NCBI RefSeq assembly: GCF_026571515.1
Contig: NW_026867237.1
Coordinates: 124,001 to 188,000 of the forward strand
Reading direction: 5' to 3'
Length of the DNA stretch: 64,000 nucleotides
Source: Ruditapes philippinarum
Taxonomy: Eukaryota
The notes beneath the pieces are model-generated. The model saw only the letters and a program-made list of their open reading frames with translations. It had not been told where the DNA came from and searched no databases. Shown in pieces: positions 10,197-47,600 of the stretch. Both the position numbers and the translations under genes were made by a program. Position 1 is the stretch's first letter. The number at the start of each line of letters is the position of its first letter.

Positions 10197-12697
10197 AAAA
10201 TGTAGACAAAACCAACCGAGATGTACTGTTTTAACTGTTCGGCAAATCCATAACACAAGTTCAGCTGGTAATGAATCACACGATATTATACATGATAATT
10301 CAACTGTTGCACCCATAGTATTGTATAATTTGTTATTGTAAATTTCTGATCAGCATTTGACTTAGTTGTTGAAGTTTGATATATGAAAAACTAATAATCA
10401 TAAAATTTGGCCCACACCTTCATTAGTTACTCTAATCGACTATTCCAGCGTTAATGTCCAATGGGATGGGGGATTTCATATCACAATTTCAAGATTGGTA
10501 ACATAATTTGACTGCGAGGGTGTGACATAGATAAAGTAATCACCGTGTCGAGATAGCACCGGAAGGGAACCTTCAATAGAAGTGTTTAACAAGAAATAAA
10601 TATAAACTTTTAAGACAAAGAATTTATCGTTTTCAATAAATTACCACTAGTTATCGCATATAGTTGTGCCCTGTGCAAATGTGGTATCCACCCCCCACCC
10701 CCAAACCTCCCAATACATCTTCATACACATCCTCTGGGTCTTAAGATAGTTTCCTCACCACATTGTTCGTAAACTTCCTTAAGACCGTACCCTTGTGGGG
10801 AAATTGTAATTTCTATATGAGCGGCATGTCACCATACCCGAGGCACACCGCAACATGTCAGCGTGATAGGTAACAAATATATATTTTATAACTTTGTGGT
10901 TAGTAAGTAACATTTTAATGTTTTGAGTTCCGTTTGTGATCATAACACGTTACATACAGTTATTATTTTCTTATATATTTAATATATTTTTAGAGTGCTT
11001 AATTTAAGAATTTCCATTAACAATCTTTCTGGTCATCTAGGCAACGCTAATAGTGATGCCGACAATATAGGGCTAATTTCATTGAAATATCATACTGTAG
11101 GAACAGTGACGTGTTGCCCCTGTTCGGCTAGATTATGCCAAGACCGAACATGTAACTGTATGAAAACTTAAGCCTCAAGTTAATGGGCTACTTCCAGCAT
11201 TCTTGGTGAAACTAGAGGGTGGCCGAAAGCACTAATGAAGCGTGTCCTTAGCCACAAAGGCAGTTCTACTGTAGAAGTGACAGGGACATCTTTTTTCTTT
11301 TTTAACCTAGAGGTTATTATTACGCACGCCTCACGTATTACACTTTTAGTTAACCTACCATTTTAGCTTCTTTTACGGAAACTGTTTGAAGAAACAATGG
11401 TAAACATTTTATAATGTTCAATGATTTATTTTTGCAATAGTACTCAAGACGATAAAAACATTGTTTATGATCATACGAAGTCAAATCCCACATGGTGGAA
11501 ACGTCCCTGAATTTACCTGAATCTACCTGCAAATACAAATGAAATCACAAATTTAATGTAAATAAGTAACAACGTTTAATGGTGTTGTTCTTTACTTTAC
11601 ATGATGAAATTTCCAGAAAACTATTAATATTCATGTAATTCTACAATTTTAATGCCCAAATATATTAAATATTTAATATCCTTAACATTTTTACACAGCA
11701 AAATTCTTCATTTTATCCACTTATGGCATTTTACTTGATTTTCGTAAAAATAATACCAGTAACCCATTGTTCTGGATTTTACACAGTTATACAATCTATT
11801 TTAGCTATGCATTACTAATGCTACCTTTTATAGTCATTTGAATGCAAATCGGGAAACAATTCCAACGAACTTAAACACACAAAATAACGGACTTGGGACG
11901 GTTGTATACAAAGTTGTGCATGCCAGTTAAAGATTAGTCAGCCTATTTATCACAAAACGGAAGAATTTTTGCATCATATTTTTAAAGACCTAATTTATAC
12001 ATGTTTTAAGTTTACAAGAAAAAAATGTCGCATTTACCCACAACAGTAATGAACAAATTAACATTTGTCAATTTTGTTTATAACTATTTATTTAATAACT
12101 CCGTCGTTTCAAATTGAAAGCCCTCAAAGGGCATTGCTCCTCCAATATAAATCAAAAGGCTTTCTGCTAGCTCAAAGAAGATTTATTGTTTTACTAAGTT
12201 GCCCACTCATGTTTGAAGTACATGTATAGTTCAGAAATGGGTTTTTGATGGGAATTCTTTCTTAAACAGAAGTAATGTTGAAACACCGTCAGATTATCCT
12301 ATTAAACTATAAGCTATAATCTCTGCTGACTACAGTTTACAAAACTTTATTTTTGAATTTTGAAAAAGAATAATTCCAAAATGCATGTATAAAAGAAATA
12401 TGTTGGGTTATTTCCTTTTGCATGCATGAAATCATTGCTAAATGGTTAAAACTATATAACATAGTAGCCTAGAATTTTGTTGCAGAACATTTTATTCTGT
12501 AAAGGTACAATTTTCATATGTGTGTGAAATAACAGAAGAATTCTATGTTACAACAGTAGCGAGAATCCATCACAAGCGCACGGAAAAAATAAAATTTTCC
12601 ATTTATAAATCTTATATTTTTTATCAGATAGAGCTTTAAACCCTTCAAGAATTATGTCTTAACTTCTATATTACGTACCTTTCTCTTAACACGAATC

Positions 12698-14059
12698 TTA
12701 CTTCTTCCAATCATAATAACTATCATCGTAGCCGTCGCCATGGTTGTCATCGTAGCCGTCGCCATGGTCATCGTCATAACTATTCCCATGACTGTTGCCA
12801 TAACCGCTGCCGCCGTGTTTGCCTTTGCCGCCTCCATGTTTTCCACCATAGTAGCCGCCACTATATCCTCCACCACCACCGAGACCACCGCCACTGAGAC
12901 CCCCGAAAAGAACTTGGATGATCAAAATGAACACAAACACTGTAAAAAAAAGATTTATATAGGTAAATATCTCAGAAATATGTCATACATTTTTACTGTC
13001 TATATTAATGCTAAGTCTGTACACAGAAACACGTGTCTTATGTACACAGAAACACGTGTCGTACACATTTATAAAGATACATTGCATACATTTTTAATCA
13101 AATTGCAAATATGAAAGTTTCTACTCAAGTGTTTTATAGATTAAATCATTTTCCGGTCAAGGTAGTTTTTATACATCATATTTATCTAGCGACTTGTTAG
13201 TTTCATAAAAGACAATGTAAACTAGTTATTTTACATGCCCTTTTTGCGAATAGAATTATTTTGAACATTTGTGATATCAGATCTAGTTATAGTCCATCAA
13301 TCAAAACGCGACAGATCAGATAGAAATAGCAATACATTTGACTGCTTTTTTACATTGATAATTAATGATGACAAAAAGTAAAGAAACGGAATCTTACAGA
13401 ATATAATCATCCCAAAGATTCCTCCGCCACCGAATCCACCGCCACTGCCCCCGCTGCTACCTGTCCACGGAGAGAGAAAAAACCCATCAGGTTAAACATT
13501 AATTGTTTGAAATGAAAGACTTTAATAGAAAATGGCATACTAGTATAAAACTTCAGAGCTTCAGTCATCACAAAGTCTTTTGATAACTTGAGTACATTCA
13601 CTTTAGAATATACAGATTTTGGCAATGGCTTTAAAATAATAGAAACACATTTAAACACTGTCCATAAACACCCAAAACACTGCAGTTATAAGAAGCCATA
13701 AATTCTCGTTTTTTTCTGAGTCAATTAACGTATGGAAACAAAATGTTAACTTACTTAAGATATTTTGATTTACTTAGCATTAAAACTAGACATGTTGGCT
13801 TACTTAGCATTAAATCTTAGTAATAATATCCTGAATATTCTTAAAAACGCAATGAAAATTTCAAAGTAAACGAAGGTCAAGTTAATAATATTTTTTAAAG
13901 ATGATAACAATAATAATCGCATTATCAATAATAAAGTGAAATAGTACCGTAATTTTGCATGCCATAGCCTCCGTATGTATATGGCATTTTGTACATGTTG
14001 CCTTGTACCAGCATTGCCACGCTGAACACGGTGACGAGTCCTACCAGGAACAACCTCAT
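12698..14059 (-). CDS. Gly-rich signal-peptide / hydrophobic-block protein, paralog A (138 aa); coding exons 14059-13948, 13460-13398, 12939-12698
   Basis: Spliced: MRLFLVGLVTVFSVAMLVQG-NMYKMPYTYGGYGMQNYGSSGGSGGGFGGGGIFGMIIFLFVFILIIQVLFGGLSGGGLGGGGGYSGGYYGGKHGGGKGKHGGSGYGNSHGNSYDDDHGDGYDDNHGDGYDDSYYDWKK*. GT-AG phase-1 introns at positions shared with the four other paralogs. Confidence 0.9.
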
Positions 14060-14247
14060 CTTGAATCTTCAACCGTCTAAAAATAAACAAAGATTCTTTT
14101 AATTAAACAAATATATCAAACATAAAAAAACGAAGATAAAATACTTAAATAAAATACGTTTTTCCTTCTAGTTATGTATCTATGTAAAACGAAATAAATG
14201 TATTTACTCTAACTATGCGGGAAGTGGTTTAAAAAAGATAGTTGAGT

Positions 14248-14275
14248 CTTATATATGGAGGGGACTTAACCGGAT
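14248..14275 (-). promoter_or_regulatory. TATA box and upstream GGA(A/T) motif, paralog A
   Basis: TATATAAG (14255-14248) about 30 nt upstream of a probable ~18-nt first exon ending at a GTAAAT donor (~14207); ccggat on the + strand at 14270-14275. Confidence 0.55.
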
Positions 14276-14931
14276 ATTCTAATAAAATTTCATATTTTCT
14301 TAGCACTTCCTGATTTTATCGGTAATTTATGTAAAACTATACGCCAGCTAATAAGTCATTTTTGTTACGGTATCTCTAACATGGACGAAAATATGAAATA
14401 AATACTAAAAAACATTCCTTTTAGAAACATATATTTGCCCCATGGGATTTTATTTCTCGTATGAAAAAACCTAAATATCCATCAATTTTGGGAAACCACA
14501 GCCGCAAAGATCTCTACAGGAATCTGAAATATAGAGTGAAATTACATATACAAGTGTATACTTTTTATGATTTTTAATGACATTTTTTACTTTATCGTTC
14601 ACCTGGTGAATTTCTTAGCTTCGATTTTTTTTCGAGACACTCCGTGATCCTAGTGAATTTCTTAAATGAAATTGCCCAGCTTCGATTTTTTTCGGGTCAC
14701 TCCGGCCGTGATCTATTTTGGAAATATGAATATATGAGCTTTAAAGTTGTTAAATCCAGGCAAGATTAAATGGATGTACAGACTAAGCTGCCTGTACATA
14801 CATGTATATTGCTGGCAAATGCTCGTCACTTTCTCTTTCAGCAGGGAAAGGGTTAAAAATCTTGAACTGCCAAACATATTGATAACAAAAGTTATAAAAT
14901 GTATAATTTTTCGATGATAAATTTTTATGTT

Positions 14932-15570
14932 TTAAAGGATCTCCACTCAGTTAAAAAGCTAAAATATTTTAATTCGTACACAGATCAGGATAAATGAAAA
15001 ATCTTCAAAGGATAATAGAGATATACTCAGAATTAAACTTAATTTATATCGAATTTATGTGCGATTCTCAGCCCGATGTGAGTGAAAGGTATTGTAACGC
15101 TTTTGTAGGTCATTTTACACAATAAAACGGATTATTCCAGAAAAAAACGGGGAAAGGTAATGATCTAAAACTTTGCACAGAAGCAATTTGACCCAGACCT
15201 ACATCAAATGGTACACAAATCTCGGAAAAATATTTTCAGTATAATTATGTCAAAAAAATCTCTGTTGAGATTAATTATGTTGAAGGGACTCTACTGAGGT
15301 TTTTTTGACATGATGGAACTAAATATATTTTTTCCAGATAATTGTACAATTTGATTTTGGTTAAGACCACTAATCTTTGTGCAAAATTTCAGATCATTCA
15401 CGCATTTCGTTTTTCCAGAATGATTATTCAAATTGTTAAAAAAAGGATTCAAAATGAAAAGCGTTTAAACACTTTTCACTCAAATCGGGCTAAGAAAAGC
15501 ATAAAAATACGATTTTCAATTTATTTCAAGGTAATTTTTTTAACTATCTTAATAACTTAGTATAAGTATC
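14932..15570. mobile_element. Degenerate fold-back MITE
   Basis: Inverted arms, e.g. ttctcagcccgatgtgagtgaaagg (~15065-15089) versus cttttcactcaaatcgggctaagaa (~15471-15495), and atgtcaaaaaa / ttttttgacat around the centre. Confidence 0.6.
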
Positions 15571-15939
15571 CAGTACTTAGCAATGGTTGTAACGTTTCTT
15601 ACTTACAGAAACGAAACAACTGGTTGTCCCTTGTTTGTTCACTTATTTTAAAGCAATAAATGAACCATTATCTATATAAGTTTAGACAGAATGTAATGAT
15701 AAAATATTCTTCCGTATATCATTTTGTGCATTTAACGCTACATTATTTGAATCGGTTAGACATAGCAAGTTGTATAATACTTCATGATGTGTAAATTGTT
15801 ATACTCAGAACAGAAAGTTTTATTTTGCTTATGGGTTAAAACAGAACTGATAAAAACGCGGAATGCCTAATGTTCATTAATGTACAATTCAAACAGGTAT
15901 ACACTGTACTCTTATATTCCAACTTGCTTCCGGAACGTC

Positions 15940-16040
15940 GGTGCCTTCGTGCCTGAAATAATGCACGAAGGTCGAGGTTTTCCTCCACCAGTAAAGCTGG
16001 AAAGTCTCCATATGACATTTACCTTAATTGGTGCAATCCC
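15940..16040 (+). mobile_element. SINE-like 3' fragment
   Basis: ttcctccaccagtaaagctggaaagtctccatatgac, related to accagtaaagctgaaaagtcaccatac at ~2877-2903. Confidence 0.5.
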
Positions 16041-18970
16041 CCAAAAGGAAACGTCAGATAACAAATTAAAGGTACATACGCATCTGTGTACTAACAGACT
16101 AATATATTTATCCTTATACTATTTGTTTTTAGACAGTATAAGATTGAAATACTCTGGTGTTACACTGGAACCTCTCTCAAAGAAACAATCATACTTTGTA
16201 TCATTCTTTTAAATATATTTTCAAGCTGAAGGCGCATTAATCCTTAGAAATATTTTTCTATACTGTAGAAATGGGAAAAATGTGTTTAAATTTTTTTTGT
16301 AAATGATTTTGACCATGTAAGATGCTAAAGAATTTTAAAAAATAGTGCTTAATGCAACATTGTCATAAAAGATAATTCAAAGATAATGTAAGCAAAGTGA
16401 TATTTTGACTTCCATACAAAATAATTAATCACTTAAACTGTACTGTATCACAAAAATGTATATAAATGAAATAATAAAAATAATAATTAATAAAAACGAA
16501 AAAGAAGCAAAAGATGGCTTAGTTATGTGACCAGTAAATAACGTTTTGGAAATTGTAACAGGACACCAATAAGAAAAGCTTTTATTAGATGAAATAACTT
16601 GCATTTTTGAGAATTTATGCGCCTGAAAAGAAAAAACTGAAAGAAAAATAGACAGAACTGATAAAAACGCACGGAATTCAAGCAGGTATACACTGTATTC
16701 TTATATTCCATCCTGCACACGGAACGTCGGTGCTTACATTATCATTATGACTATAATTAATTAAGTAATTAAGTAGGGGCTATAGCAATTTCTTTTGCAT
16801 GATTTGATTGTGGCTAATTTTTTGGTTCTGGCTCATAATTATCATATATTTTCATGATTTTCAAAATTAAAACATTTTTCAAGATCATAACTTTATTCTC
16901 TTTTATTATATAATAACAACAATAACAACATTTATTTAGCAATTAAACATAAGAACGCTTTTAGCCATAATATATCACTGCCATAAAGTGAAAATGGCAC
17001 GAAATGTCATGACATCCAATATTTTGGCATAGAGAAGTTTACACAATGGATAAAACGTTTTTAAGTAAGAAATTTAAATTGTAATGCAAATATAATTAAC
17101 TATTCCTTCATTTACATGTATTTGAAAAGAATATATATTTTGATAAATTAAACAGTTGACGTTCATTACCTGTGGACATCAGTCTCTCGAATTTATCAAA
17201 AGTTGGCCACCTACATAAATACGGTTTTAAATATTTTTCCTATTAATTTCTCGATATATTGGGCAGACAACAAGAAAATGATACACATCTTCAATCCAAT
17301 CAATTTATATAGTTGTTATCTTAAGATGATTAGCTAATGATATAGGCTGGTTGAAACTAATAAAAGATTATGTTTATGTTTTAGGAAATAGTTATTAATT
17401 GTGAGTGCATTGTTGTAGAATATAACACACTGTTCGAGTTAAATTGCATATTAGGAATAAAATCACAAAGGCCGATAGGTCTGAGTGATTAATTACAAAG
17501 CATATGAACGAAAAACCGTGTGGTATTAAACGAAAAAGTCATAATGTAATATTTGATTGCTCTATCCGCTTGTTTGAATTTTTGGCAAAGAACGTTTGCT
17601 CAGTCAACACTCATTCTGATATGTCGTCATATTTAAGTTTTCGGGACGAATGAATAGGCTTTGGAACTAATTTCATCAATTCCCTCTTTGTTGTTATACT
17701 TTTTTGTCAATTGTACACTTTTAATTCCCGCCGACCACATTTGGATGTTTGTTAGCATTATATATTCTAAGAATATATTAATATATTATTTACTTTTGTA
17801 AATTTGTTGGAAAGACATACTTGTATCACAATTCTTTAGTCTGGTCCATGTTAATGATTTTTGGGGGTTTATTTTTGTGTTGTTTTTTGTTTGTTTGTTT
17901 TGTTGTTTATTTTTAATTTTCCACCAGTGATAAAATGAAAATGTTTGACAATATTTCGAATCCTATTTGAATTTTCAATAGGACACGTGAAACAAAACGA
18001 CATAATCCGACAGTGATGCTGAAATGTGTATTTATTAAGTAAAAGAAAAAACAATAACAATTCAAAAAAGACGTTGGTCATGTCTTTTGAAATTGTGGCA
18101 ATCTCGTTTGTCGGTATCCGTTTGAAGTCGTTTATCCGTGCATTCAGCTCTGTGATTTCGTCCGCTGAAAAAGAAGATAGGAGCTACAGAATAAAAATTT
18201 GTAAATGATTCCAACACTGTGGAAATTTTAAAAAATCGGATGTACAAAGTTAATTAAAACAAAGAGAGAAAAAATTCTGGACACTTCACAAACTGAATTT
18301 AAATATTATTAATGATAGGAATTTAATGGATAACTGAATAATTGCTTTTTATGAGAATCTTTAAAACGTGAATACAGCAAGTTTAGGAGCGCTAAGTTAA
18401 TTCAAAACATTGAAAACAAGAAATATCTTTGAAACGATATTACATTGTGATAAATTTGGTTTAACAGTTGCTTGGCCATTTTTTAGTATTCTATTAAATT
18501 AATGCAGAAATAATACCATTGCTCAACAAGACCGCGATTACTTATTTAGTTTGCTCAATTGTTATTGAAGCATTCTTTTTTAAACAGGAAGATTGACTGC
18601 GTAAGGACCAACGTAGGGAACATATTGCTTTCGTGTTAGATACTTGCAAAACTAACAACAGTGTAACTTTTGAATTCCGGAACTTCTGAAATTCGGAAAC
18701 TTTTGAAATCCGAACAATTATTAGAGTTCCAAAATTTCTCCAGTTTTCTGTAGTAGAAATAGTTTATAGGACCTTGATAACACATGAAAATAATAAAACG
18801 TTTTTCTGTATAACTAAAACAGTTGTATTTGAAGCGATTAGTTTAGTAGATATTTCTATCATATCAAAGGAATTTAGCTATTTCAATCAGGCATAATTTG
18901 ATTTTTTTTTTTGATATTTTAAACCAATCTCAGTTTGACAATGGTATACTAACCTCAGTGTGTATCTCTA

Positions 18971-20542
18971 TCAATAATCATTATCGTGACTATGACTACT
19001 GTGGCTGCTGTGACTGCCGTGACCTCCACCTTTGTAATAGCCACTGCCACTATATCCCCCGTAACCTATGTTACCACCACCGATAGAACCGAAGCCTCCA
19101 CCCGAACCAAACAATACTCGGATGAATATAATGAATATAAATACTGAAATATAGGATAAACATTAAAACAACATGTGTGAGTTTCTGTATGTTATCACCA
19201 TAGTTACTGTGCTGATACCTGGGTTAACTCCTCGTTCTGATTTTCAACGGTGGATTGTCCTCTGAATCATTGAACAATGTCAACACGAAATGATGATTAT
19301 TAAAATTGAAAGCCATTAGTGTTTTTTTTCAATTACGTATGAATTGATGTAAATGGTGGTACAAAATAATTATATTATATACTATTGATTTTACAAACGA
19401 AAAATATTTCAGTGATATATATCTTTTTAGTTATATAGAGCAAATTTCCAACCTAGAACACAGTGGGAAATTATAATACTAACCCGTTTTATTTTAAGAT
19501 TTTTTTTGTTGAGGCTTTATGCATTCATTATTTTTTGTAGATCATTTATTATTAAAAAAGATATACGAAGGTTTGAATATGCAAGACTTTTAATCCTATT
19601 ACTTTTTGAACAACCATCGTATTAATGAAAACATTCCTTAGCAAGAGCTTTTTTATTTATTGTGTATTCTTGCCGCGCATTTTGTCCAAAAAGCTATTTG
19701 GTCCGCCACCCTAATAGTGATGAATCATTAGGAATAGGCTGTATACAATATGTATTTATTTGTAAAGAGCATTATGTTTAAATTACATTTTATTGATTGA
19801 ATATCGTAAAGTCTAGTAATATACTCACAGAATATTAGCATCCCAAATATTCCACTAAACCCGTAACCTCCTGATCCGGAGCTGAATCCATTGCCTACAC
19901 CGCCTGAAATAAATATATAAAAACATAACTGATACATATGACGAAGTTACGTTAAAAAAATTGGAACGTGGAAAGAACTTCTTTAGGTCTATTTATAACT
20001 TGTTTTAAAGATAAAATCAACCAATTAAATGTTCGCTTACATACTTTATCGACATGGTTTCATATCAGTAAACCTGTTCGGACTCAATAAATATTTCGAT
20101 GTGGTACATTCATTTTATCATTTTATCATTTTTATGGTGTGCCATCCAAATGCATATCAATTATTGTGAATTACAATATTTTCTTTTTGAATTTTACAAG
20201 TAGATTTATAAAAGAAAGAAGAAAAACAACTTATAAGCAGGATCGTTTGCACATATAATTATCATATTTCTTATGGGTACAACGACATTTTCAGCTGATA
20301 AAAAAAAAAAAAAAAAAAAAAAAAGCAAATAACTACAACCCAATCGCTCCAACATGAATACACGGGTTAAATGCCATTCGGAACACTTCGCCGATTATCC
20401 ATAATCCCTATCCGGACATTTTTATTTTCTAATAAGACTCACCGCCAGAATAGCCATAACTCATCGGCATCATCTTGTAATTGCCGGAAACCATCATGGC
20501 CCCACTAAGTATACAAACCAGCCCTATGAGCAGCAACTTCAT
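18971..20542 (-). CDS. Gly-rich signal-peptide / hydrophobic-block protein, paralog B (115 aa); coding exons 20542-20443, 19903-19829, 19143-18971
   Basis: MKLLLIGLVCILSGAMMVSG-NYKMMPMSYGYSGGGVGNGFSSGSGGYGFSGIFGMLIFLFIFIIFIRVLFGSGGGFGSIGGGNIGYGGYSGSGYYKGGGHGSHSSHSSHSHDNDY*; GTGAGT donors, phase 1. Confidence 0.9.
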
Positions 20543-21104
20543 TCTGAACGGTGTTCTGAAAAACAGTTCGATAATAACATAATGATTAAAAATACAATAT
20601 ATATGCGTAAGGTATCTTAAGAACAATGAAATCCAAACAAAGTCGGAGGAAACTGGCAAACTTCAATGAGTTTGAATGAAATGTGAATTTTCCAATCTCC
20701 AGAAACTGTTTCATTGTCTACAATATATTTTGATAGATGATAGTTTTCAACATAGTGGTTTGCGATAACAGATCTGAAATGATTAGAGCGTAACACATCT
20801 TTAATTGCTTAGCATCGTACTAAAATGCTTTTTAAATCATTTCGATCTTTTAATCTCCATTTCATATATTCTACTATAACTCATTCATAACAAATCCAGT
20901 AAATTATAGATTCATTGTTTACGAAATCTTCGGAAAAAAATTAAATCCGCTATTAAAAAAGAGTAAGTCAAATTAATCATTTTATCCGCTTCAGATGCAC
21001 AATTCAACAAAACGATCAGATTGTTTTCTAATGAAATTCTTAGACGCCTCTTTATAAGAAACACGAAACAATAGGTCTACTGTAGTGGTGGCAGTTTTAC
21101 TCAC

Positions 21105-21167
21105 ACGATTCAACTACTACTGCTAAACGATGAAGATGTTGTATATTTATATATTGTCAAGAGGAAA
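21105..21167 (-). promoter_or_regulatory. TATA box and non-coding micro-exon 1, paralog B
   Basis: TATAAATA (21151-21144), likely start ~21121, GTGAGT donor at 21104; aggaaa on the + strand at 21162-21167. Confidence 0.6.
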
Positions 21168-21519
21168 TTGCAACAAATATTTTGCTTATTTTTTATTGAT
21201 TTGTTAAAAAAAAATAGCGACGTTCGTCTGATAAAATCACTTGAATGTTCAAAGTATGCAATTTTGCTTAAGGAAATGAACATGAAGCTAAATTTAGATT
21301 TTGTGTCCAATTACGGACAAAAGCGAATATCCACATATTTTTGCTTTACAATATAAAATGTAACCAACTATCTATGAACTTGAAAATACAGTTTTCTAGA
21401 GTTTTGCATATTTTTTATTCTTTATGAACTGAGCAAGGCGGTTTTTGCTATCGAATAAATTAGATTCCACCATTTATTTTTATCTCATTTAGAGCATGTA
21501 TTCTTTTTCCATAAGTTCT

Positions 21520-25262: not shown

Positions 25263-26409
25263 TTAATAAGCGCCGCCGCCGCCGCCTTTATATCTCCCTC
25301 CACCACCACCGCCTATGCCGCCGCCCCCAATACCCCCAAGTCCTCCTGAACCAAACAGGATTTGTATAAAGAAGATGAATATGAATACTGGAATGGAAAA
25401 ATGATTGATGAATTGAACAAAGTTTTAGTATATATTATTGTTTATATCATATATGTCCAATAAAACTTAAAATAAATATCCCCCATGGCTAAATATAAAA
25501 TATTGATATTAATTAGAGAGGGAATGGCATAGCTTATTAATTAATAATAAATGAATTAAAATAAAGTATTATCAGTAACTTTAAAGTAAATAATTTTTAT
25601 AGATGCAGGTATTTCCTGAACTGAAGTCTGACTAACACGATGCTTTTGGCTTTGAACTTGGTTACTTATTATCTTTCGCACAGCATAGAATTTACCTTAT
25701 CTCTCATTATGTTTGATTTCAGCAAACTGTGTATTACCGGGTATTCAAATATTATATTTAATTGGGTTAAATTAAAAACTTACAAAAGATTATCATTTCA
25801 AAAAGACCGCCAAAAGATCCTGATCCTGATCCGCCCGAGCCTCCGAATCCACCGATACCGCCAAAACTGCTGCCACCACCACCCATACCTAAAAAGAAGA
25901 GTAGGGTAAATAATATGTTTTCATAATTCATTGAATCCCAATGGTCCTCTTACTCTTCTGTTTCATATCAGTTTACATACATGTAGGTTGTGAATAATTG
26001 TAAAGAATATTAAAAGAGATATACTCTTATTAAGATATAGTCATATGCTTTTATTTGCAAGTCGATAGAGAGAACAAAAAACAAAGCAATGATAAATGAT
26101 TGAATTAATATGATGAACCAATTAAAACTCATTAGTCGTCAGAATTAATTGAAACAATTTCCTCAGCAAAACGTTAGGAAAGGACAAACGTAATCAAAAT
26201 ATCCTAAATTATTGATTAAAACTGTCCTCCTGAAATCGGTATTTCAAGATTATATTATGGTTGCTATTGCAACACAAGATTTTCTTACTTGCATGAGAAA
26301 ACAAAATACACATACCGTAACCATAGGACATTGGCATCTTGTAATAATTGCCGGAGACCATCATGGCCACACTCAATACCACAACCGCTCCGATCAACAC
26401 CAACTTCAT
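25263..26409 (-). CDS. Gly-rich signal-peptide / hydrophobic-block protein, paralog C (107 aa); coding exons 26409-26316, 25888-25784, 25387-25263
   Basis: MKLVLIGAVVVLSVAMMVSG-NYYKMPMSYGYGMGGGGSSFGGIGGFGGSGGSGSGSFGGLFEMIIFLFIFIFFIQILFGSGGLGGIGGGGIGGGGGGRYKGGGGGAY*; canonical splice sites, phase 1. Confidence 0.9.
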
Positions 26410-33730: not shown

Positions 33731-34937
33731 TTAATAATCGTTATCGTGGCTGTCAGTGCTGTAGCTGTTTCCGCCGCCTTTATGACCACCACCATGACCA
33801 CCATGTCCTCCACCTTTTCGATACCCGCCGTAGCCTCCCCCTCCGCCTCCGCCTCGACCCCCTATTCCTCCTATTCCCCCACCTCCACCGGCTCCGAACA
33901 ATAATTGAATCAACAGTATAAACACGAACACTAAAATACAACAAAAATATAATGATATAGCATTAAGAATATGTTAACGTTTATTAGTGCGTATTTACAA
34001 AATTTATAAATTGGTCAGTACTAATCTATTTTAACCGGCTTAGTGTTTTAGATTATTTTTATGAACAGCCGATTTAAAAGACTGATTAACAGTTTGCCGA
34101 TTTACCAAAGTAAATGTGATACGATTTATTTGAAAAACTGTAATCCTATTGGACAAACAATAATTTCAAACACTAAAAATGACATGATGAATGTAAGTAT
34201 TGCGTAATGATTCAAAGATAAGTAATAGAAAAGTAATCATAACAATTGTACTAAAGATTTTAATTATCATATTTATTTGAAATAAAACATTTATGATATG
34301 TTATAATAAATCAGTTTACTAGCAGAAAATATTTGCATTTTTTATAAATAAAAAAGAACTTACAAAATATGATCATTTCAAATAGTCCTCCAAATCCACT
34401 TGCTGAAAATCAAATTTAGTCATTTTTAAGAAATATCTAGAAAAATGTGTAATTTTAAGAAATATCTGTAAAGTATACAAAACGGTATAAACACGTGTCA
34501 ATAAAAATGCTGAAGAATTTATGTTGTAAAACACTTAAATCCAATAAAATATTATGACAAGCCATTAATTAAATGAGCCGCGTCACGACAAAACCAACAT
34601 AATGGGCATCCGCGCAGTCTGATCAGGATCCATTCTGTTCGCTATCAGTTTCTCTACTTGTCATAGGGTTTGTAAGCGAACAGCATGGATCCTGATCAGA
34701 CTGCGCGGATGCGCAGGCTGGTCTTGATCCATGCTGGTCGCAAACGCATTACGTTGGTTTTGTCGTGACCCGGCTCAAAAGAAACTTACAGCCTCCTTGT
34801 CTACCACCGCCGACTTGTCCCCCACCATAACCATATGACGGCATTTGCATCTTCATGTTTGGCATTTTGTACATGTTAGCGGATGCCATCATGGCCACAC
34901 TGAAGAGTGTCACTGCCCCAAGTATATATATCCTCAT
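33731..34937 (-). CDS. Gly-rich signal-peptide / hydrophobic-block protein, paralog D (128 aa); coding exons 34937-34790, 34402-34364, 33930-33731
   Basis: MRIYILGAVTLFSVAMMASA-NMYKMPNMKMQMPSYGYGGGQVGGGRQGGSSGFGGLFEMIIFLFVFILLIQLLFGAGGGGGIGGIGGRGGGGGGGYGGYRKGGGHGGHGGGHKGGGNSYSTDSHDNDY*; GTAAGT donors; 39-nt middle exon. Confidence 0.9.
34573..34777. mobile_element. Palindromic MITE, copy 2 (in an intron of paralog D)
   Basis: atgagccgcgtcacgacaaaaccaac ... gttggttttgtcgtgacccggctca, with a deletion in the left arm. Confidence 0.85.
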
Positions 34938-37812: not shown

Positions 37813-38773
37813 TTTGTGTCGCCTCTACGGAGTAGTGGCGACATATAGGGATCACTTCTCCGTCGTCTATCTGTCCGTCTGTCCGTCTGTCTGTATGTCT
37901 GTCCGTCTGTCTGTCCGTCCGTCACAAAACTTGTCCGGACTACTCCTCATAAACTACTGGTGCAATTTCATCCAAACTTTACAGGAATAATCAGTGCCAA
38001 TGCTAGTTGGGCATATTGTCAGCATTTTTTGGTTCAATGATTTTTGTCAGAGTTATGGCCCTTTGATAATTTTAAATTTTAAAGTTTGTCCGGACTACTT
38101 CTCTTATACCACTAATGCAATTTCAATGAAACTTTACAGGATTGATCTGTAGCTCAAGTCCTTGCGCAAAGTGCACGGGTTTTCCGGTTGAATGATTTTT
38201 GGCCGAGTTATGGCCCTTTGATAAAAAGGTTTCATTTTCTGTATGTTGCCAGATACACAAAAGCTTGTCCGGACTACTCCTCATAAACTACTGGTGCAAT
38301 TTCATCCAAACTTTACAGGAATGATCAGTACCAAGTGTAGTTGTGCATATTGTCAGCATTTTCCAGTTCAATGATTTTTGTCAGAGTTATGGCCCTTCAA
38401 TAAATTTTATTATTAAAGTTTGTCGGACTACTTCTCTTATACAACTAATGCAATTTCAATGAAACTTTACAGGATTGATCTGTAGCTCAAGTCCTTGCGC
38501 ATATTGCACGGGTTTTCCGGTTGAATGATTTTTGGCCAAGTTATGGCCCTTTGATAAAAAGGTGTTTTTTTCTGTGTGTTGCCAGATACACAAAAGCTTG
38601 TCCAGACTACTCCTCATAAACTAATGGTGCAATTTTATCCAAACTTTACAGGGATGATCAGTACCAAGTCTAGTTGAGCACTGTCCGTCTGTCTGTCCGT
38701 CTGTCACAAAATTTGTCCCAACATGAAATTGGCCATCATGAGGCGACACATGTGATTACTGATCGCTCTTGTC
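37813..38773. mobile_element. HINE-type element with alternating internal repeats
   Basis: subTIR tgtcgcctc (~37817) and gaggcgaca (~38740), GTCC/GTCT microsatellite ~37860-37923, repeated ttgtccggactact..aaactttacagga units. Confidence 0.85.
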
Positions 38774-39139
38774 AATCATTTAAAAGCACTGTGTCCAGAT
38801 CTTTTTAGCTGTTAGTTTTGTATTGTAGCATCATATAAGTAATATAATTCAGTGAACATTTTATATGTACTTCTAGATTTATTGTAGATTATGTAGACAA
38901 TGGTGTAAGTTTAGTGTATTGAACATCTTTGTAGCCTAAGTTTACTTAATGAAATGAAAACTTGGATTGTTCAATATTTTGAAGCAGTTTCAGCTAGAAG
39001 TAACACTTTTATTGGTAGTAAAATTTTATAGTTTCAGCATCGAAGACAATCAGCTTGGAAGAGAAATGTGTATGATGTTAGTGTCAACCAGTTACCAATA
39101 GAAGCAAACACAGTAGTAAGTCCCTTTTCCTTCCAATTA

Positions 39140-39385
39140 TTTTTAGCGGGACTATTCGATAAGAATAAGTAGAGCTATTGTAGTCACCCAAGCGTCGGCG
39201 TCGGCGTAACCACTTATGTTAAAGTTTTGGAATACCTCAAATATTTTCAAAGTTCATTGACATATGGCTTTGAAACTTTGCACACTTCTTCAGCACCATG
39301 ACCCCAACCAGTAGAAAGGAGGAGGTAATTGTATTAATTATTTTGACAGAAGTATGCCATTTTTCATCTTAGAATTTCGACTTTC
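39140..39385. mobile_element. Truncated HINE-type element head
   Basis: tttttagcgggactattcg...agagctattg followed by (GCGTCG)n. Confidence 0.55.
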
Positions 39386-39744
39386 AAGCCTAAACATAGA
39401 AAGCTACAAAAAAAAAACAATTACAGAACAGTACATACTTTGAGGGGTTCAGTGCAGCCTAGTTTTACATATAAATTTAATGTTACCTGTATGCTTACTT
39501 CAATTTTACTTTTTTTGCCTAGCGTTCAGGCCGCCATTTTATGAACCAATTGTACGATTTTGGTCACGTGATAATCCGCAGTGTTATTTACATACTAGTA
39601 GTTTATTATTAACTATTTATTTGGTATGTTACTAAATATTTTAGGAAAAGAGTCAACAGCCTAACAGATGAAGATTGTGTCCCAACAGAAGAAACAACAC
39701 TATCACCAGCCTTAACAGGTGTGCTTGAATTTTTTTTGAATTAT

Positions 39745-41125
39745 TATACACACGAAACGAAGTTTTGGGGGTAGGGTTATGTTTGCATTTTAATTGTACG
39801 GAGCATAACTTGAAGACTAATGGTTGGATTTCAATACAACTTCATACAATGATCAAGCACATAAAGAGGAAGTGCAGTGTACATGAACCGTAACTCCATC
39901 TTGAATAATTACAGAGTTATTGCCCTTTCTTACTTTTCCTTGTCCGAAGCATAAATTGAAAACTACTAATTTGAATTAAAAACAATTCCATACAATGGTC
40001 AAGCACAATAAGTGGAAGTGCAGTGCACAATAACCATAACTCTTTCCAGAGTAGTTATCTTGTTATTGCCCTTTGTTACTTTTCCATTGCTTTTTCTTGT
40101 CCAGAGCATAACTTAAAAACAACTAGTTGGAATTCAATACAACTTCATACAATGGTCAATTACATTGGGAGAAAATGCAGTACACAGTAACTATAACTCA
40201 ATCTTGACTAATCACAGAGTTTTTCCATTTGATACTTTTTCTTCTTCAGTGCATAACTTGAAAACTAATGGTTTGAATTCAATGCAACTTCATACAATGT
40301 CAGGCACAATAAGAGGAAGTGCAGTGCACGAGAACCATAACTCTATCCAGAGTATTAATAAAGTGGTTGCCCTTTGTTACTTTTCCTTGTTGGAAAACAT
40401 AACATGAAATCTACTGGTTGGAATTCAATACAATTCATACAATTGTCAATTATATTGAGAGTAAGCGGAGTGTACAGAAACCACAACTATTTCTTGACTC
40501 ATTTAAGATAGTCTGCTCTTTGTAACTTTTTATTGTCCAGTGCATAATTTGAAAATTAATGGTTGGAATTCAATGAAACTTCATACAATGGTCAAGCGCC
40601 GTAAGCTGAAGTGCTGTGCACAACAACCATAACTCTATTTGGACTAATTATATAGTTATTGCCCTTTGTTACTTTTTTGTCCAGTGCATAGCTTGAAAAC
40701 TAGTAGTTGGAACTCTATTCAACTTCATACAATGAGAAGAAGTACAGTGTACAATAACCATGACTACAAATTCAGTATTTTCAGAATTATTGCCCTTTGT
40801 TCCTTTCCCTTGTGCGGTGCATAACTTAAATACTTATATTTGGAATACATTGCAACTTCAAACAATGGTCAAACATACTGAGAAGAAGTGCAGTGTTCAA
40901 GATGTGTAACTCTTTCTGGACTTATTACATAGAAATGCAATAAAGCTTCATCAATGGTCAACCACATTGAAAGGAAATTCAATGTATTAGAATCACAACT
41001 AGATCAAATTGCCCACAACCATAACTCAAGTTCAATTATTTTACAAGGTTTTCTGTTTCTAGTAACTTCCTTATTTCCGAAGCAGTCTAACGGGGGTATT
41101 TATCACATTAAGTTATAGTTATAGT
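39745..41125. mobile_element. Older HINE-type element with ~147-bp tandem array
   Basis: About 9 diverged units carrying aacttcatacaatggtcaa and gttattgccctttgttact; ends ttatacacacg.. and ..cgggggtat. Confidence 0.75.
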
Positions 41126-41264
41126 TTATTTTAAATTAAGTTTGAGAAGTACTGATTGATGAAAAAATATCCCTGATGCGCCAAGAAAATGTCCATTTCT
41201 CCGGCATTTAATCTTTCAAAATATTAAATGTAAAACAAACTTTCAAAATTCCATTTTAAATAGA

Positions 41265-41580
41265 TCCGCCCATTGTTTTCTCGTTTTTATACAGTACGTG
41301 GGGACCATATTCCGCTTTTCATGGAATGGTACTTATGTGTCCACATTGAAGGTTCCATGAAACCGCCATATCAACACATCTGCAGATGTTTCAAAATTCA
41401 AAATTGTACCATTTCTTGTTAAATTTTAAATTCTGTTCAAGCCGAAGCTAGGGGCGTGGACAGTACTTTGCACTTGACAGTACCGTCCATTAACAGGCTC
41501 AATCAAACCGAGCCTGCAACATTTTCGAATTTGTCGAGTTGGGCTTTCTTTAGGGATTCTTATTTTCTCTATTTCATTAT
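41265..41580. repeat. Dispersed repeat, copy of 28440-28780
   Basis: Colinear similarity (ccgcccattg..., acagtaccgtccat...ctcaatcaaaccgagcc.gcaacattttc). Confidence 0.75.
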
Positions 41581-43057
41581 GATACTAAATAAAAAATTAA
41601 AAAAATAAAATAAATTCTTTTTTGTTAAATAATTGTAATTTATAAACTTTTTTTTTCATTCGAAAAAACGCTATAACTATGATGTAGAGCCTAAGCGTCA
41701 GCAAAATACTGGTACATTAAAGAGAGATATTCCTTGTGTTGTTATAATTTGGCTATTGGAGACGAATACCATTTATTTTGCATATGTTATTTCTACGATG
41801 TAATAAAAACTCACATTGCTATTATAGACATTCTTCAATATACAAATTTATCCAGCTGTTCACCCCCCCCCCCCAAAAAAAATAAAAAGAATTTGTAGCC
41901 TATACGTTTATGAATCTCTCACTTAGGTAGGTATACGCTTTCTACATTGGTGATTATGTTCATTCTCCAAACATTTTTGTTTCCATACCAAAGAAGTACT
42001 ACTTTTAAATAGTCTTATTTGTATATGTATTACAATTTAATCTATATAATTATTGTACAATTGCCATGAAACAATTAAAAATGTGAAAAGAAAGGAAACA
42101 GTTGATGAAAGACAAATACATAAAACAATAAAGGATGAGGATGCTTATGTTTATTTATGTTTGAGACGAAACTTAGCGATTTTCTTTGATAGAAAACAAA
42201 CTCTGTTTCTAATGCTGAAGGTATATATATATATATATCACATGCAACTGTAAGTTAACAAACAGATTGTGACATCGTGTTTGCAATCTCCCAGTTGCAG
42301 CACAGTCTGTGGTAGATCGTCATCATACGGAAGTCGGTATATCAGAACCATATCTAAAATCAGAATAGAAAGCTTTAAAAAAGTGATTGGTTGAAGATGT
42401 TAAACTAGTAACATTCATTGAATGGATAAAAATATTTAAAAATAAGATATTCAAATAGTCTACATGATTCGTATTACACGACAAAAATTGAAGATATTAC
42501 AGGCTTGGTGTAACTGCATTTTTTCAAGTACAACAAAGGTAAATGATGATTGCCCTACATGATCCTTAGCAGCGACTCTAGCAGAATTTAAACTCAATAT
42601 TTAAATATGTAAATTGTGTATAATTTAAAATGCACAAAAGGAAATGTTTGAGTTAATCACAAATACATGTATATTATTTCTTTCCATTATTTACATGTGA
42701 CTTCAATCAAAGATTATCAACACTTCTAACTTTCTTATCTCTCATTCATTATAATATCTGATATAGTTATTGTTAAAAAATTAAATGTTTACTTTATTAT
42801 ACATGTAATTATCTTAAAGGTAACTGATGGTGATGAATATTAATATCACTTTTGATATTTCTATTAAACATCATAGAATAATATTCGAGGATATTGAATG
42901 ACTGTAGGTTTACTACAAAATTTATTCAACGAGTTCAATACATTTATGTATTTCAATAACTTTAGTATTAAACCCAAACCAACACTCATTCAATATTCAC
43001 CCTTTATTACACTCTGTGCCATGGTTAATGTGATAAAAGTAAGTTTTACCTCGGAGG

Positions 43058-44457
43058 TTAATAAGAATTATCATGGCTGTCATGATCGCCATAGCCACTG
43101 CTGCTGCCATAGCCACTGCCACCATGTTTACTATATCCGCCATATCCGCCTCCGCCTCGACCTCCAAGACCACCTCCAGCACCAAACAATACTTGGATAA
43201 GGAGGATGAACACAAACACTGAAACAAATTGAATAGAAAATAATAATTATAACATTTAATAATTTAATCGTTTTTGAAACTGATCTAAACTTTGAAAAGG
43301 GGTGATCCTCCTTCGAGGGAAACGAAGACAGAACTAAAAAGATGATAATTACAGGCAAGGTTTCAGTCTAAAACTGCTTATAAAAAAAACGAAGACTTTT
43401 TTCAGTTTTGCATTACATTTTGCTAAGCTATATTTTGTGGAGTTCGTTAATATTAGTGCAGAATACACTAAATGTGGAGCTACATAAGTAAAGTTAAGTA
43501 AATAAATGAAAATATTGACAAAAAACATTGTTACTCACAGTAGATTATGATTTCAAATATACCACCGCCAAATCCAGAGGCTGCAATAGAAGGACAAGAT
43601 CGAGATAATTTAACTTAATGTATAGTATCTAAAAAGATAAAAATCAGATGTGATAACAAAATGTTTATTATGTATAGATTATTTACATCTTTTATGTGCT
43701 ATTCATGTAGAGAATTTGAAAGTTTATTGATTAAAATTATCCCCTTAATTCAAACATTATCGATCTTTGTAATTTTTTATTTAAGAATAAATACATTAAT
43801 TGTATATTCAAAATTTTCAATTGGTATTCCTCAGTTCCAGTAGAAATAAACATTAGTATATTGTAACACAAAATACTGAATAGTGATTAACAAAAATATA
43901 TACACATGTGTTTCTGTCATAAATTGTTCCTTTCACTGAATGATGCATGATTAAGATTAAAGACAATGGCTAGATTTCTTAGTTTTTCTAAAATAAAATT
44001 ACATAAAATTAAAACCTTAAAGAAAATTAAAATTGTTGCAGGTTCTGTTCATGGACTTAGACTACCGTCTATGCCCCTTTCTCTGGCATGAAGAACTTAG
44101 TTGTGGAATTGACGTGAAACTTAGAATTTAGAATGTCCATTAAAAATAATGTGTTCATTTCGCAGCTAACACGGAGAATTTGATGCTTCACCATGCCATT
44201 CAATGACAAGCGGCGTAAGCATTGACCCCCAAGTAAAAGAATGTGTGTAACCTAAGCAAGAAAATAAAGGCCGAAACTTAATAAAACATAATTTTCAGAA
44301 GGGATCAGAAGTAAAAAAACTTACAGTTATTGTTGTTTGTCATATGTCCACCATATCCATATGCCATTGGCATCTTCATGTTATGCATATACATGTTGCC
44401 TGAGACCAACATGGCCGCACTGAAGAGTGTGACTGCTCCAAGTAAAAACAATTTCAT
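43058..44457 (-). CDS. Gly-rich signal-peptide / hydrophobic-block protein, paralog E (111 aa); coding exons 44457-44325, 43580-43539, 43218-43058
   Basis: MKLFLLGAVTLFSAAMLVSG-NMYMHNMKMPMAYGYGGHMTNNNNSSGFGGGIFEIIIYLFVFILLIQVLFGAGGGLGGRGGGGYGGYSKHGGSGYGSSSGYGDHDSHDNSY*; not present in the ORF track in the correct frame. Confidence 0.9.
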
Positions 44458-44596
44458 CCTTGCTGGTGATTCTTTCTGAAACAAGTGTAACGATAGTAGT
44501 AATCAGCCATGGTTTGGTTTGATAAAATTGTTTTGTTAAAATTATAGACTAAATGTTTAAAAATAAACAAGTAAAATAACAACAAAGCATACTTAC

Positions 44597-44659
44597 TTCC
44601 CATTCACACTGACTTAATTTGCAAAAAATAGTTCTTTAAATAGTTTTAGATAGCGGAAA
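44597..44659 (-). promoter_or_regulatory. TATA-like + Inr core promoter and 14-nt first exon, paralog E
   Basis: TATTTAAA (44642-44635), TCAGT Inr with A at 44610, GTAAGT donor at 44596; cggaaa on + at 44654-44659. Confidence 0.7.
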
Positions 44660-47600
44660 TAAGGTCTCTCAATTGGAGAGAAATGTTAAAAATAGAAAAT
44701 TCAATCCCATATTTCCACTTTCTTTACAGATCAAACAAAACCACTTTTACCCCAAGCAAAATGTGGCGGCCACGTCTTTAGTCGTAAAACCTGTGAAAGA
44801 TGTAATGTTGCCACAAAACTGTTGAAACTCGACCTATATCACATAGTTTTAAAAAATTGATAAAGTACAAACGATTCCTATAAAAAAACATTCATTTATT
44901 ATGTCGTTCACTTTTTTCAAATCAGTTGATGCTCCTAAATGCTGCTAAACGCTTTAATGATAAGAAAATGTTTTAGAACATAAAAGTTGGATGACATTGT
45001 TATGTAACACAAGAAAAATATAAGTACAGATGATTTAAATTTAGTATGTCAAAGTGGTGCATCAAGTCCAATTAACGCAACCTTTCTACATGTCTTGGCT
45101 AGTCCAGCGAGCCAGTGATGCGCATCTTAAAAGAATCAATTGTGTAATATCTTCAGGAAGTTCAGCGAACCAAAGAAGAGCAACAAATCAATGTGGTGTT
45201 GCAAGTCGTCTTGGAGAAGCTACAAGTTCATGCTGTGCAGCCAGCCAAAGTGGTGCCGAACGTCCATTATGTGCGGCAGGTTAAGAAAGTACAGCACATC
45301 CAATAAGCGCAACATGTCCTGGTAGTGCAAGAAGTCCAAGTAGTGCAACAAGACGAGAAAGTGGTACTACCTCAGGAGCTCCAACAAGTATATATTTTAA
45401 TGTAAATTTTGGCCAGGTAGTAAAAGTACTGCTTTAATTCATGCAAATAATATAAAGTGACATAAACATTACTGCAAACAAAACTAGTTGAGCATTCAGA
45501 GTATAAACTACTTCTTTGTGTCAAAAACCTATTCGGGGAGCATCACCCGGTCCGGCCAGCTCTTTTTATTCTTTTAGCTAAGTTTAAATTGAAGTCTGGA
45601 GAAGACATGTTTGTCGGAAATGTATTTACTCTTGTTTGACAAACAGATAATGACTAAAGATTATCAGAAGTATCGTTATTGTCAGTTGTTACTTATAAAA
45701 GTATAATTTATATATATATTTTTTCTAAATATTATAATTCTAAATGATCATATCCATGGCCTTGGGGTAAATAACGAGGAAAGATAGAAAACCATGTATA
45801 CATGTATGTGTGCTACATTGCTACATTTTATCATGTCAATGTATTCTGTCTTAACTAAGGAAGATTTTTGACAAAATGTTAACTGACAATTTTGTTTATA
45901 TTTTTTAAATTTTATATCAGATGTGTTGATATATATACAAAGTACATAACAACTTTTAACGTTTAGTCTAAGGAAGGTTTGAGGAAATTTAACTTTATCC
46001 TTTAAGTTTGAACAAATCCCGATTGATGTTTATGACATGTGTATTGTCAAATGGTCATTCAGTGATTAAAACGGGAATTGATAAATATTGTAATTAGAGG
46101 CATAAAGATACAATGAAAATATTAACAATTTTATTTCGAAGGCCCTTAAGCATAAACTTAATATTGCAAATAAGGACTAAATTTATCATTTCCTCAAACA
46201 TTTCCTAAATAAAATAAATATACGTATGTATGTAGTTATGTTTGTTACTGGTAAAGACACACACATACATAGATAACTTTTCTTCTTCTTTACAGTACAT
46301 GTATTTATAACTTAAATGTTTGGCAAAACGGCAAAATTTATAATGTTACAAACTCGGTTTATTAAGCATTTACGGCAGCGCTTGTGCAAGTTATTTTCTG
46401 TCCATGCCCCTGCGCAACGGCGCAAGAACACTCATTAATAAGACCGAGTCTGCACTTCTCTCCGAAGGTTTTCAGAGCTCAAAGAATCATCTAAACTTAA
46501 TACTTATTTAATTTAATTTAATTCTAGTTTTGAATTAAAAGAACATATTTATATTGTGTAAACTACGATAGCTATAGAATTGCTTTGTTCTGCTCTTAAT
46601 TCAATTAGCCATTGTATAAGGGGGATATAGAAACATTAACAAAAGTAAAACATATGCACTACATGTAATATGAATAGTATGGAAAATGAATTTCATTTCC
46701 TTTTACTTTGTCCTTTTTATACAGCTTAAATATTATTACCACTGGCCATATTTGTTTAAATTTAAATCTCATTTAAATTGTGCTGTAGACAAAGTATGTT
46801 TTTGATAATGGACTTGTAAAATAGGTTAACGTACAAAGCTAATCTTTGGCACGAAAATTTCAGGCGTGAATTAATTATTATGTTATATAAACTTAGTTCA
46901 TGTAAGATATTAATCAGCAATAGTAAGATAGTGTGTGATTGTTTTGTTATTGTCAACAGACTTTGTTCAAACTAATTTATATGACTTCATGCTTTTATGT
47001 GTACCGCTGCTGTAAATATGTTATATTGGCAATGTTTGAACATGTATATGTTTTGCCAAATAAAATATTGAATTGAATTAAATTTAAGTTTTGTGCTCAT
47101 TGCTCTCGAGGGATGACCTCTTTTGATTTATTTACAGGAAACATTAGAGTTAATTTTTTGCTCCTTATTTAAATTCATTCATCCACAAGCTCACTCTCTA
47201 TCAATATGGTAGACATAACAGGTAGAAATAAAACAAATTCATTTTTGATTAACTTATTCTTTCGAATATTTTCGAAATTAGAAATGTCGAAACAAATGCG
47301 GACCTTTTGAAATTTTGAAACATTTCATTTTCTTTATTTATGACAAATAAGTTATTTCCGATAGGCTATAAGACAAAAAAGATGCTTTTGTTACTAACTT
47401 TGGAGTATATATACAGTACAACTTTTAAAATTAACTACATGTATAAGCGCTTGCTTTACACAAGTTATTGCATAAATGATTGATTACAAAGTTTTTTTTT
47501 TCAAACGGTATGGATGTATTACATTTGGTTTATATGTTATTAAAAATCCCTGGAGGTGAAAAGACATATACATTTTCCATGTGGTAACAGGAAATGCATA

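Follow-up and report, generated by a model that had tools for sequence, protein, structure and literature searches.

The clam Ruditapes philippinarum carries an undescribed and unannotated family of at least 11 intact genes, whose products combine a signal-peptide-like N-terminus and fast-evolving arms rich in glycine and tyrosine with a nearly invariant hydrophobic block. Our best explanation, which we hold as a whole with middling confidence, is that the family is lineage-restricted and that its members are type I single-pass membrane proteins with the helix as their functional core, rather than freely secreted materials proteins. Five of the genes lie in the window that we analysed, a stretch of 64,000 nucleotides (contig NW_026867237.1, positions 124,001 to 188,000) to which the coordinates below refer unless the contig is named, and at least six lie beyond it.

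The models rebuilt from the window sequence comprise five intact genes, all co-oriented on the minus strand, with products of 107-138 aa, three coding exons in open frames, and two GT-AG introns, all in phase 1. In g1 (138 aa), coding exon 1 (13948-14059) encodes the start codon, the signal peptide, and the Tyr/Met/Pro motif and is followed by a GT donor; coding exon 2 (13398-13460), flanked by AG and GT and in phase 1 on both sides, encodes the Gly run and, in its final 25 nt, block residues 1-8; coding exon 3 (12698-12939) opens with 38 nt for the remainder of the block and goes on to a Gly/Tyr/His/Asp tail and a stop codon. Coding exons 1, 2, and 3 lie, respectively, at 20443-20542, 19829-19903, and 18971-19143 in g2 (115 aa), whose tail is His/Ser-rich; at 26316-26409, 25784-25888, and 25263-25387 in g3 (107 aa); at 34790-34937, 34364-34402, and 33731-33930 in g4 (128 aa); and at 44325-44457, 43539-43580, and 43058-43218 in g5 (111 aa). 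All five are laid out as a predicted signal peptide, a Tyr/Met/Pro motif, a Gly run, a 21-residue hydrophobic block, and a Gly/Tyr(/His/Asp) tail. The initial annotation had described five intact co-oriented paralogs with one exon plan and an architecture ending in a Gly-Tyr-His-Asp tail; the models agree with it in general for all five, except that the tail of g3 is pure Gly and devoid of His and Asp. Searched with a degenerate pattern that covers the block's first half, the window has eight matches where 1.26 are expected, five of them at the five exon-2 ends.

The same annotation had placed a five-gene family between TMEM214 and ATR. Both flanks were found, on the plus strand: an exon at 694-858 matches the C-terminal part of TMEM214 (PF10151, positions 531-565 of the 660 in the profile, at an E of 0.0037 that falls short of the curated cut-off), and an N-HEAT exon of ATR lies at 60505-60804 (PF25032, E 2.9e-4). 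ATR runs on beyond the window, with a UME exon at contig positions 206667-206828 and a kinase exon at contig positions 231730-231876, both also on the plus strand. The five genes do stand in this interval, but the cluster resumes on the far side of ATR, where three further intact members follow just past it on the same contig. This brings to eight the family genes on the contig, all on its minus strand (five on the upstream side of ATR, three on the downstream side), and three members lie on other contigs. The block-internal intron is kept in 11 of the 11 core loci; the six of these that lie beyond the window have this intron and lack intron 1. C15256 is unlikely to be a simple haplotig of g8, the alignable stretch being only 2.1 kb, at 88%.

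Protein searches were run exon by exon, with exon profiles. With the exon-3 profile, a word-index search of 5.8 billion clustered proteins brought back only a g3 fragment; when this profile was run exhaustively in HMMER over 1.84 billion representative proteins, the single entry returned was P0001, a 66-aa public ORF fragment in which 41 of 43 aligned residues are those of the last exon of g3. The exon-1 profile retrieved only unnamed fragments in the word-index search, and the word-index searches with the exon-3 profile, the exon-1 profile, and the fragment P0004 yielded a total of five unnamed genomic ORF fragments, which run on into intron sequence. Ten exon translations had no match in Pfam, and there was none in PDB profile searches or in the ESM Atlas; the metagenome contigs scanned held no relatives, and a full-text literature search with block strings found no match. 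Papers on Met-rich insoluble shell proteins describe large, unrelated proteins. No named Gly-rich materials protein was significantly similar to the exon profiles, at a sensitivity that is low for such short, low-complexity profiles. Annotation and large protein collections miss the family because of its very small, low-complexity exons, in line with the earlier expectation of an uncharacterised family that is easily overlooked.

The family is under purifying selection, a conclusion that follows from saturated synonymous sites, rare replacements, and the pattern in one young pair. Nei-Gojobori estimates for the block in ten genes give a mean pS of 0.85, which is saturated, and a mean pN of 0.15 (pN/pS = 0.17), and in some gene pairs the block peptide is identical though pS is ~0.7-0.9. 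The young pair g8/gB differs by seven synonymous and three conservative changes in 303 nt, with 12% divergence in the intron. Introns and flanks share no similarity by blastn (word 9, E<=0.01 for introns), upstream sharing being limited to microsatellites and repeats, so gene conversion is not the cause of the conservation; the saturated synonymous sites also rule it out as the source of block identity. This comparison among paralogs, of the dN/dS type, upholds the earlier view that these are old duplications with dissimilar introns and maintained by purifying selection.

The encoded proteins join very unequal parts. A rule-based check found the marks of a signal peptide in all members: they start with Met-Lys/Arg, go on to a hydrophobic core whose Kyte-Doolittle maxima over 12 residues are 2.0-3.1, and have small residues at -3/-1 (contexts VSG, AYA, ASA, and VQG). 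The arm N-terminal to the block (25-48 residues) is rich in Tyr, Met, Pro, and Gly, the tail (18-67 residues, shortest in g6 with 18) is of Gly/Tyr(/His/Asp) low complexity, and both vary widely among members in length and composition. Ectodomain Met residues number five to six in g4, g5, and gA and zero in g8/gB, so Met enrichment is not family-wide, and copper-transporter-like Met-x-Met or Met-x-x-Met clusters are not found across all members. The block has a 19-residue Kyte-Doolittle mean of 2.5-3.1 in ten members and 2.1 in gC, and the free energy of insertion, summed on the Hessa scale, comes to approximately -1.8 to -4.7 kcal/mol. In its variability, the strongest period is 105-115 degrees (permutation p 0.0016, alpha index 3.56), and there is no beta-strand signal (index 0.83, p 0.57); this periodicity lends no support to a beta-amyloid core. 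On a helix, about two thirds of the surface, a near-invariant Gln toward the predicted cytoplasmic end included, is fixed and one stripe of positions is variable.

Because the block is hydrophobic enough for insertion and has a helical periodicity with no beta signal, we favour membrane-anchored over freely secreted proteins. The signal peptide, predicted to be cleavable, would direct the N-terminus into the ER lumen, and the 21-residue Phe/Ile/Leu block would act as a stop-transfer helix, which would leave the Tyr/Met/Pro/Gly arm outside the cell and the Gly/Tyr(/His/Asp) tail in the cytoplasm. The conserved functional part would then be the helix rather than the arms, its fixed face packing against its own copies or a conserved partner and its variable stripe facing lipid. 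In membrane helices that are apolar elsewhere, a Gln or Asn is a known driver of association between helices. As for the role, our preferred guess is that membrane-tethered Tyr/Gly arms anchor or seed a Tyr-cross-linked extracellular material on the surface of a secretory epithelium. We give little credence to the idea that these are the "periostracin-type" precursors, water-insoluble Gly/Tyr proteins that were never sequenced, held in the membrane by an invariant self-associating helix until cross-linking of the Tyr-rich arms would template a nascent periostracum, ligament, or cuticle-like sheet on the cell surface and tether it there; if true, an extracellular biomaterial would be built by way of a membrane anchor. 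A number of arguments stand against the membrane reading. First, the charges past the helix show no clear positive-inside bias: the first Lys/Arg comes 4-25 residues past the block, 13-25 in most members, and the tails carry net charges of -5 to +2, several being net acidic; g6, the shortest member, speaks for the membrane reading here, with an Arg four residues past the helix. Second, a cross-linking-like Gly-Gly-Tyr-(x)-Lys motif, conserved in the tail at a conserved distance past the block, would fit better outside the cell. Third, the spliced full-length product was found in neither of the two protein collections.

The second of these arguments bears on the alternative that survives best, which we consider possible and yet doubtful, namely that the genes encode fully secreted scleroprotein precursors with arms Tyr/DOPA cross-linked in periostracum, ligament, or another material, and with the helix as a self-assembly core that might leave the cell with lipid or vesicles, or by cleavage, as in lung surfactant protein C. 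Molluscs commonly have small Gly-rich secreted proteins in tandem families, and the composition of the predicted mature proteins (18-48% Gly and 6-12% Tyr) is close to that of periostracin, a water-insoluble protein with 55% Gly and 10% Tyr whose sequence was never determined (PMC3821031). The tail motif lies near the published Tyr/DOPA cross-linking consensus, of the Gly-Gly-Gly-Tyr-Gly-Gly-Tyr-Gly-Lys type (PMC6007483), which is approached within one mismatch in the g4 and g5 tails and in the ectodomain of gA, the remaining members having two mismatches or no match. Yet a stretch of 19-21 Phe/Ile/Leu residues this apolar is expected under translocon rules to integrate into the ER membrane, fast arms around a near-invariant block are the opposite of what most materials proteins show, and the variability of the block is helical. 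The structural or biomaterial reading of the initial annotation was drawn from composition only; the exhaustive profile search returned no significant similarity to named Gly-rich materials proteins, and the block has the length, hydrophobicity, and helical variability of a membrane helix, which should keep the protein in the membrane.

Comparison with known systems sharpens the distinction. Periostracin, shematrins, KRMPs, abductin, and the Lymnaea glycine-rich shell-forming candidates resemble the family in their signal peptide, small size, tandem arrangement, and Gly/Tyr low complexity, and molluscan Gly/Tyr-rich materials proteins also have Tyr flanked by Gly and then Lys, near the cross-linking consensus. 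Here, in contrast, all members carry the 21-residue block, the arms vary and the helix is conserved, and no significant similarity was found; we know of no molluscan Gly/Tyr materials protein with a central invariant apolar helix of membrane length. The lung surfactant protein C precursor illustrates a secreted fate compatible with such a helix, as its ultra-hydrophobic helix is at first inserted into the membrane and may later be extracellular with lipid, but it is type II, contains a BRICHOS domain, and is cleaved on either side of the helix, whereas the clam family shows neither BRICHOS nor such cuts. The prion protein and Shadoo are likewise small secretory-pathway proteins in which a signal peptide is combined with Gly-rich repeats, some of them containing His, and with a hydrophobic segment that is central and invariant; their tract, however, is Ala/Gly/Val-rich and marginally membrane-competent, and they are GPI-anchored, whereas the clam proteins have neither similarity to them nor a GPI signal.

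If the helix is all that matters, the proteins might instead be small accessory or channel-forming membrane subunits, akin in kind to FXYD, KCNE, or viroporin-like proteins, in which the arms would be largely neutral spacers. This seems improbable to us, even though it would account for an extremely conserved helix with one variable face, for arms free to vary in length (18-67 residues) and composition, and for a g6 that retains just 18 residues of tail. FXYD, KCNE, and DAP12-type adaptors do share with the family a signal peptide (cleavable in the clam proteins by prediction), a short ectodomain, a best-conserved helix with a polar residue, and short variable tails. The family nonetheless lacks homology to them and ITAM-type YxxL pairs, and its extreme Gly/Tyr arms are foreign to those proteins; the FXYD motif (Phe-x-Tyr-Asp just before the helix, with conserved Gly residues inside it) is absent from the alignment, inspection of which revealed no other known signature, and Pfam gave no match. 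Furthermore, conservation of a Tyr/Pro motif near the N-terminus and of a Tyr-Lys motif in the tail argues against neutral arms, and there is no candidate partner.

We regard it as very improbable that the products are processed into Gly/His-rich peptides with antimicrobial or antifungal activity, cut from either the tail or the arm N-terminal to the block: the Gly/His-rich tails of g2 and g4 do recall arthropod and plant antifungal peptides, and tandem expansion is typical of immune effectors, but the candidate peptides have no flanking dibasic processing sites, the conserved part is an apolar helix that is neither amphipathic nor cationic, several tails are acidic, and His is scarce or missing in g3, g6, g7, and gA. 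That the loci are silent relics or chance open frames, as the absence of a spliced product from protein collections might suggest, is scarcely credible given eleven intact loci with conserved splice sites, the low pN/pS at saturated synonymous sites, the excess of synonymous over conservative replacement changes in g8/gB, and the presence of relatives in other assemblies.

If expressed, these genes represent a new architecture among molluscan low-complexity proteins, in which arms evolve freely around a helix left almost unchanged in duplicates old enough for synonymous sites to be saturated, a pattern that would point to specific contacts between helices within the membrane and offer a testable link between the cell surface and a Gly/Tyr-rich extracellular material. 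An entire multi-gene family has been missed by standard annotation and by very large protein collections. The gene models can be added to the databases used in shell, periostracum, and ligament proteomics, where the scarcity of Lys and Arg calls for a non-tryptic protease.

The regions upstream of the genes are less conserved than had been proposed: no preserved promoters were found, since the 500-bp and 3-kb upstream regions have only microsatellites and repeats in common, and the co-regulated set proposed in the initial annotation likewise finds no backing in these regions. Seven of ten genes have an acceptor-like TTTYAG at most 20 nt upstream of the ATG (background 2.4% per gene), which suggests a non-coding first exon upstream of coding exon 1. 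In g1, an in-frame TGA sits between the acceptor-like site and the ATG.

The five small Gly/Tyr-rich paralogues in the window (g1 to g5, all on the minus strand) follow one common plan when their models are rebuilt from the sequence. The first coding exon runs from the start codon through a signal peptide of 20 residues into a short Tyr/Met/Pro motif with Tyr-Gly-Tyr at its end; the second encodes a Gly run and then the first eight residues of a central hydrophobic block of 21 residues; the third opens with the remaining thirteen and continues into a Gly/Tyr tail, part of which is rich in His/Asp in g1, g2, g4, and g5, and in g3 is not. Both introns are in phase 1 and bounded by GT...AG in all five genes, and the products of g1 to g5 are 138, 115, 107, 128, and 111 aa long, respectively. 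In the window, a degenerate pattern describing the block's first half matches eight times, vs. 1.26 expected. The shared plan, the splice phases, and this excess confirm the five paralogues of common architecture described in the initial annotation, and the genes, judged by their sequences, are real. A MITE-like element of ~210 bp with terminal inverted repeats has at least four copies in the window (8522-8751, 34565-34775, 59325-59443, and 61281-61514), the second copy being inside intron 1 of g4, and the g4-g5 interval contains tandem arrays (37923-38680 and 39794-40734; periods ~333/155 with 2.3-3.9 copies and ~146 with 6.4 copies).

The count of five genes was nevertheless too low. Exon-level profiles were searched against the whole 1.41-Gb assembly, of which the window is C15724:124001-188000, and the matching loci were read, which gave six additional intact loci: g7 (~241-242 kb), g6 (~248-249 kb), and g8 (~256 kb) on the minus strand of the same contig (C15724), and gA, gB, and gC, the most divergent member, on contigs C13196, C15256, and C6192. 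All six have the phase-1 intron at the identical position within the block and lack intron 1, and therefore have two coding exons each. In gA, the start of the last exon is partially repeated in tandem, as 2-3 copies just upstream of the real exon (contig 115186-115461), each coding for the beginning of the block's second half. Since ATR matches lie inside the window (N-HEAT) and at 206.7 kb (UME exon) and 231.7 kb (kinase exon) of C15724, the family flanks ATR on both sides: five of its genes lie upstream of ATR and three downstream, every one on the minus strand. The cluster is thus not confined between TMEM214 and ATR, as had been thought; the left-flank match to TMEM214 is a single exon below threshold. 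Long open frames of reverse-transcriptase/LINE type occupy both strands at 49300-56228 of the window, apparently within an ATR intron. A more distant look-alike (gD; C12917, contig 206226-206800, plus strand) encodes a signal peptide, a Tyr-Gly-Tyr/Pro motif, a Gly run, a hydrophobic block of 18 residues, and a tail that is basic; its phase-1 intron comes before the block and not within it. This gene hints at a wider superfamily.

The block peptide is under purifying selection. Across ten distinct loci, its 21 codons have a mean pS of 0.85 and a mean pN of 0.15, so synonymous sites are saturated, and in several pairs of loci, entirely different codons specify the same block peptide or nearly the same one; these same observations rule out gene conversion as the source of the identity. 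This dN/dS-type comparison bears out the selective constraint first proposed. Introns are dissimilar, as had also been noted, and so are the flanks. The preserved promoters that had been claimed are not seen: the 3-kb upstream regions share nothing but microsatellites and repeats. One pair, g8 (C15724:255885-256558) and gB (C15256, 5263-5912), aligns over only ~2.1 kb at 88%, with 12% intron divergence and ten coding differences, seven synonymous and three conservative; from its sequence, the pair is either a recent duplication or a haplotype of very high divergence.

What might this conserved block do? The consensus reads G-[IL]-F-[EGQ]-M-I-I-[FY]-L-F-[VIL]-F-I-x-x-I-Q-x-L-F-G, with nine positions invariant and Gly runs on both sides. 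Averaged over 19 residues, the block's Kyte-Doolittle hydropathy is 2.1 in gC and 2.5-3.1 in the other ten members, and a rough Hessa-scale sum comes to -1.8 to -4.7 kcal/mol. Translocon rules have a segment of such hydrophobicity become membrane-integrated, and by these established rules the block is expected to do so. The best-supported mechanism, to which we give an even chance, is that the products would be type I membrane proteins with the helix as their functional core.

The main rival, which we hold to be rather unlikely, is the secreted scleroprotein of the initial annotation. It is kept alive by three arguments. First, 13-25 residues usually separate the helix from the first basic residue that follows it, and acidic tails also occur. 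Second, a Gly-Gly-Tyr-(x)-Lys motif is conserved in the tail and, in g4 and g5, is at most one mismatch from the Tyr/DOPA cross-linking consensus given for quinone-tanned proteins (PMC6007483). Third, the mature proteins have 18-48% Gly and 6-12% Tyr, a composition resembling that of periostracin, a water-insoluble protein of 20 kDa in which Gly makes up 55% and Tyr 10%, and whose sequence was not determined at the time of the source (PMC3821031). In a protein still anchored in the membrane, the outer arm, with its conserved Tyr/Pro motif, could support the same cross-linking chemistry.

Within the membrane-protein reading, the variable positions of the block (4, 8, 11, 14/15, and 18) form a single helical stripe, and the spectrum of variability has its maximum at 105-115 degrees (alpha index 3.56, permutation p 0.0016). 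With one variable face, two conserved ones, and a near-invariant Gln, the block would be expected to be a helix packing against its own copies or against a partner, rather than a passive anchor. Nor is this the pattern expected of a beta-aggregation core, and the variability has no signal in the beta range (p 0.57).

The family is undescribed, in agreement with its first assessment as uncharacterised, according to exon-wise searches whose power is limited because the conserved part of a single exon is 8-13 residues, the remainder is of low complexity, and g3's own fragment scored just 40 bits. Ten exon translations had no match in Pfam, profile searches of PDB returned nothing meaningful, ESM Atlas gave no usable match, and neither these nor the protein collections searched with exon profiles provided a named relative. 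Metagenome contig scans found no relatives, and the block strings had no match in a full-text literature search. Among 5.8 billion clusters searched by word index, and again among 1.84 billion representatives searched exhaustively with HMMER, the exon-3 profile matched P0001 alone, a public 66-aa ORF that corresponds to the last exon of g3 plus read-through intron. The exon-1 profile gave four more fragments (P0002-P0005), all running from the exon end straight into the intron, and therefore genomic ORFs, not transcripts. P0002 is ~97% identical to gA. The other three probably derive from other species: P0003 shares ~76% identity with g7, P0004 ~80% with gA along exon 1, and P0005 ~50% with the member closest to it. 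No fragment carries a name or an accession. A protein search seeded with P0004 found nothing further.

Finally, a polypyrimidine tract and AG lie 1-18 nt upstream of the ATG in all ten genes (e.g., window 14060-14080 and 44458-44480). Seven of the ten have an acceptor-like TTTYAG site within 20 nt of the ATG, against a background of 2.4% per gene, the paralogues not being independent, and in g1 an in-frame TGA separates this site from the ATG. Together, these features suggest a conserved 5'-UTR intron, with a non-coding first exon likely further upstream.
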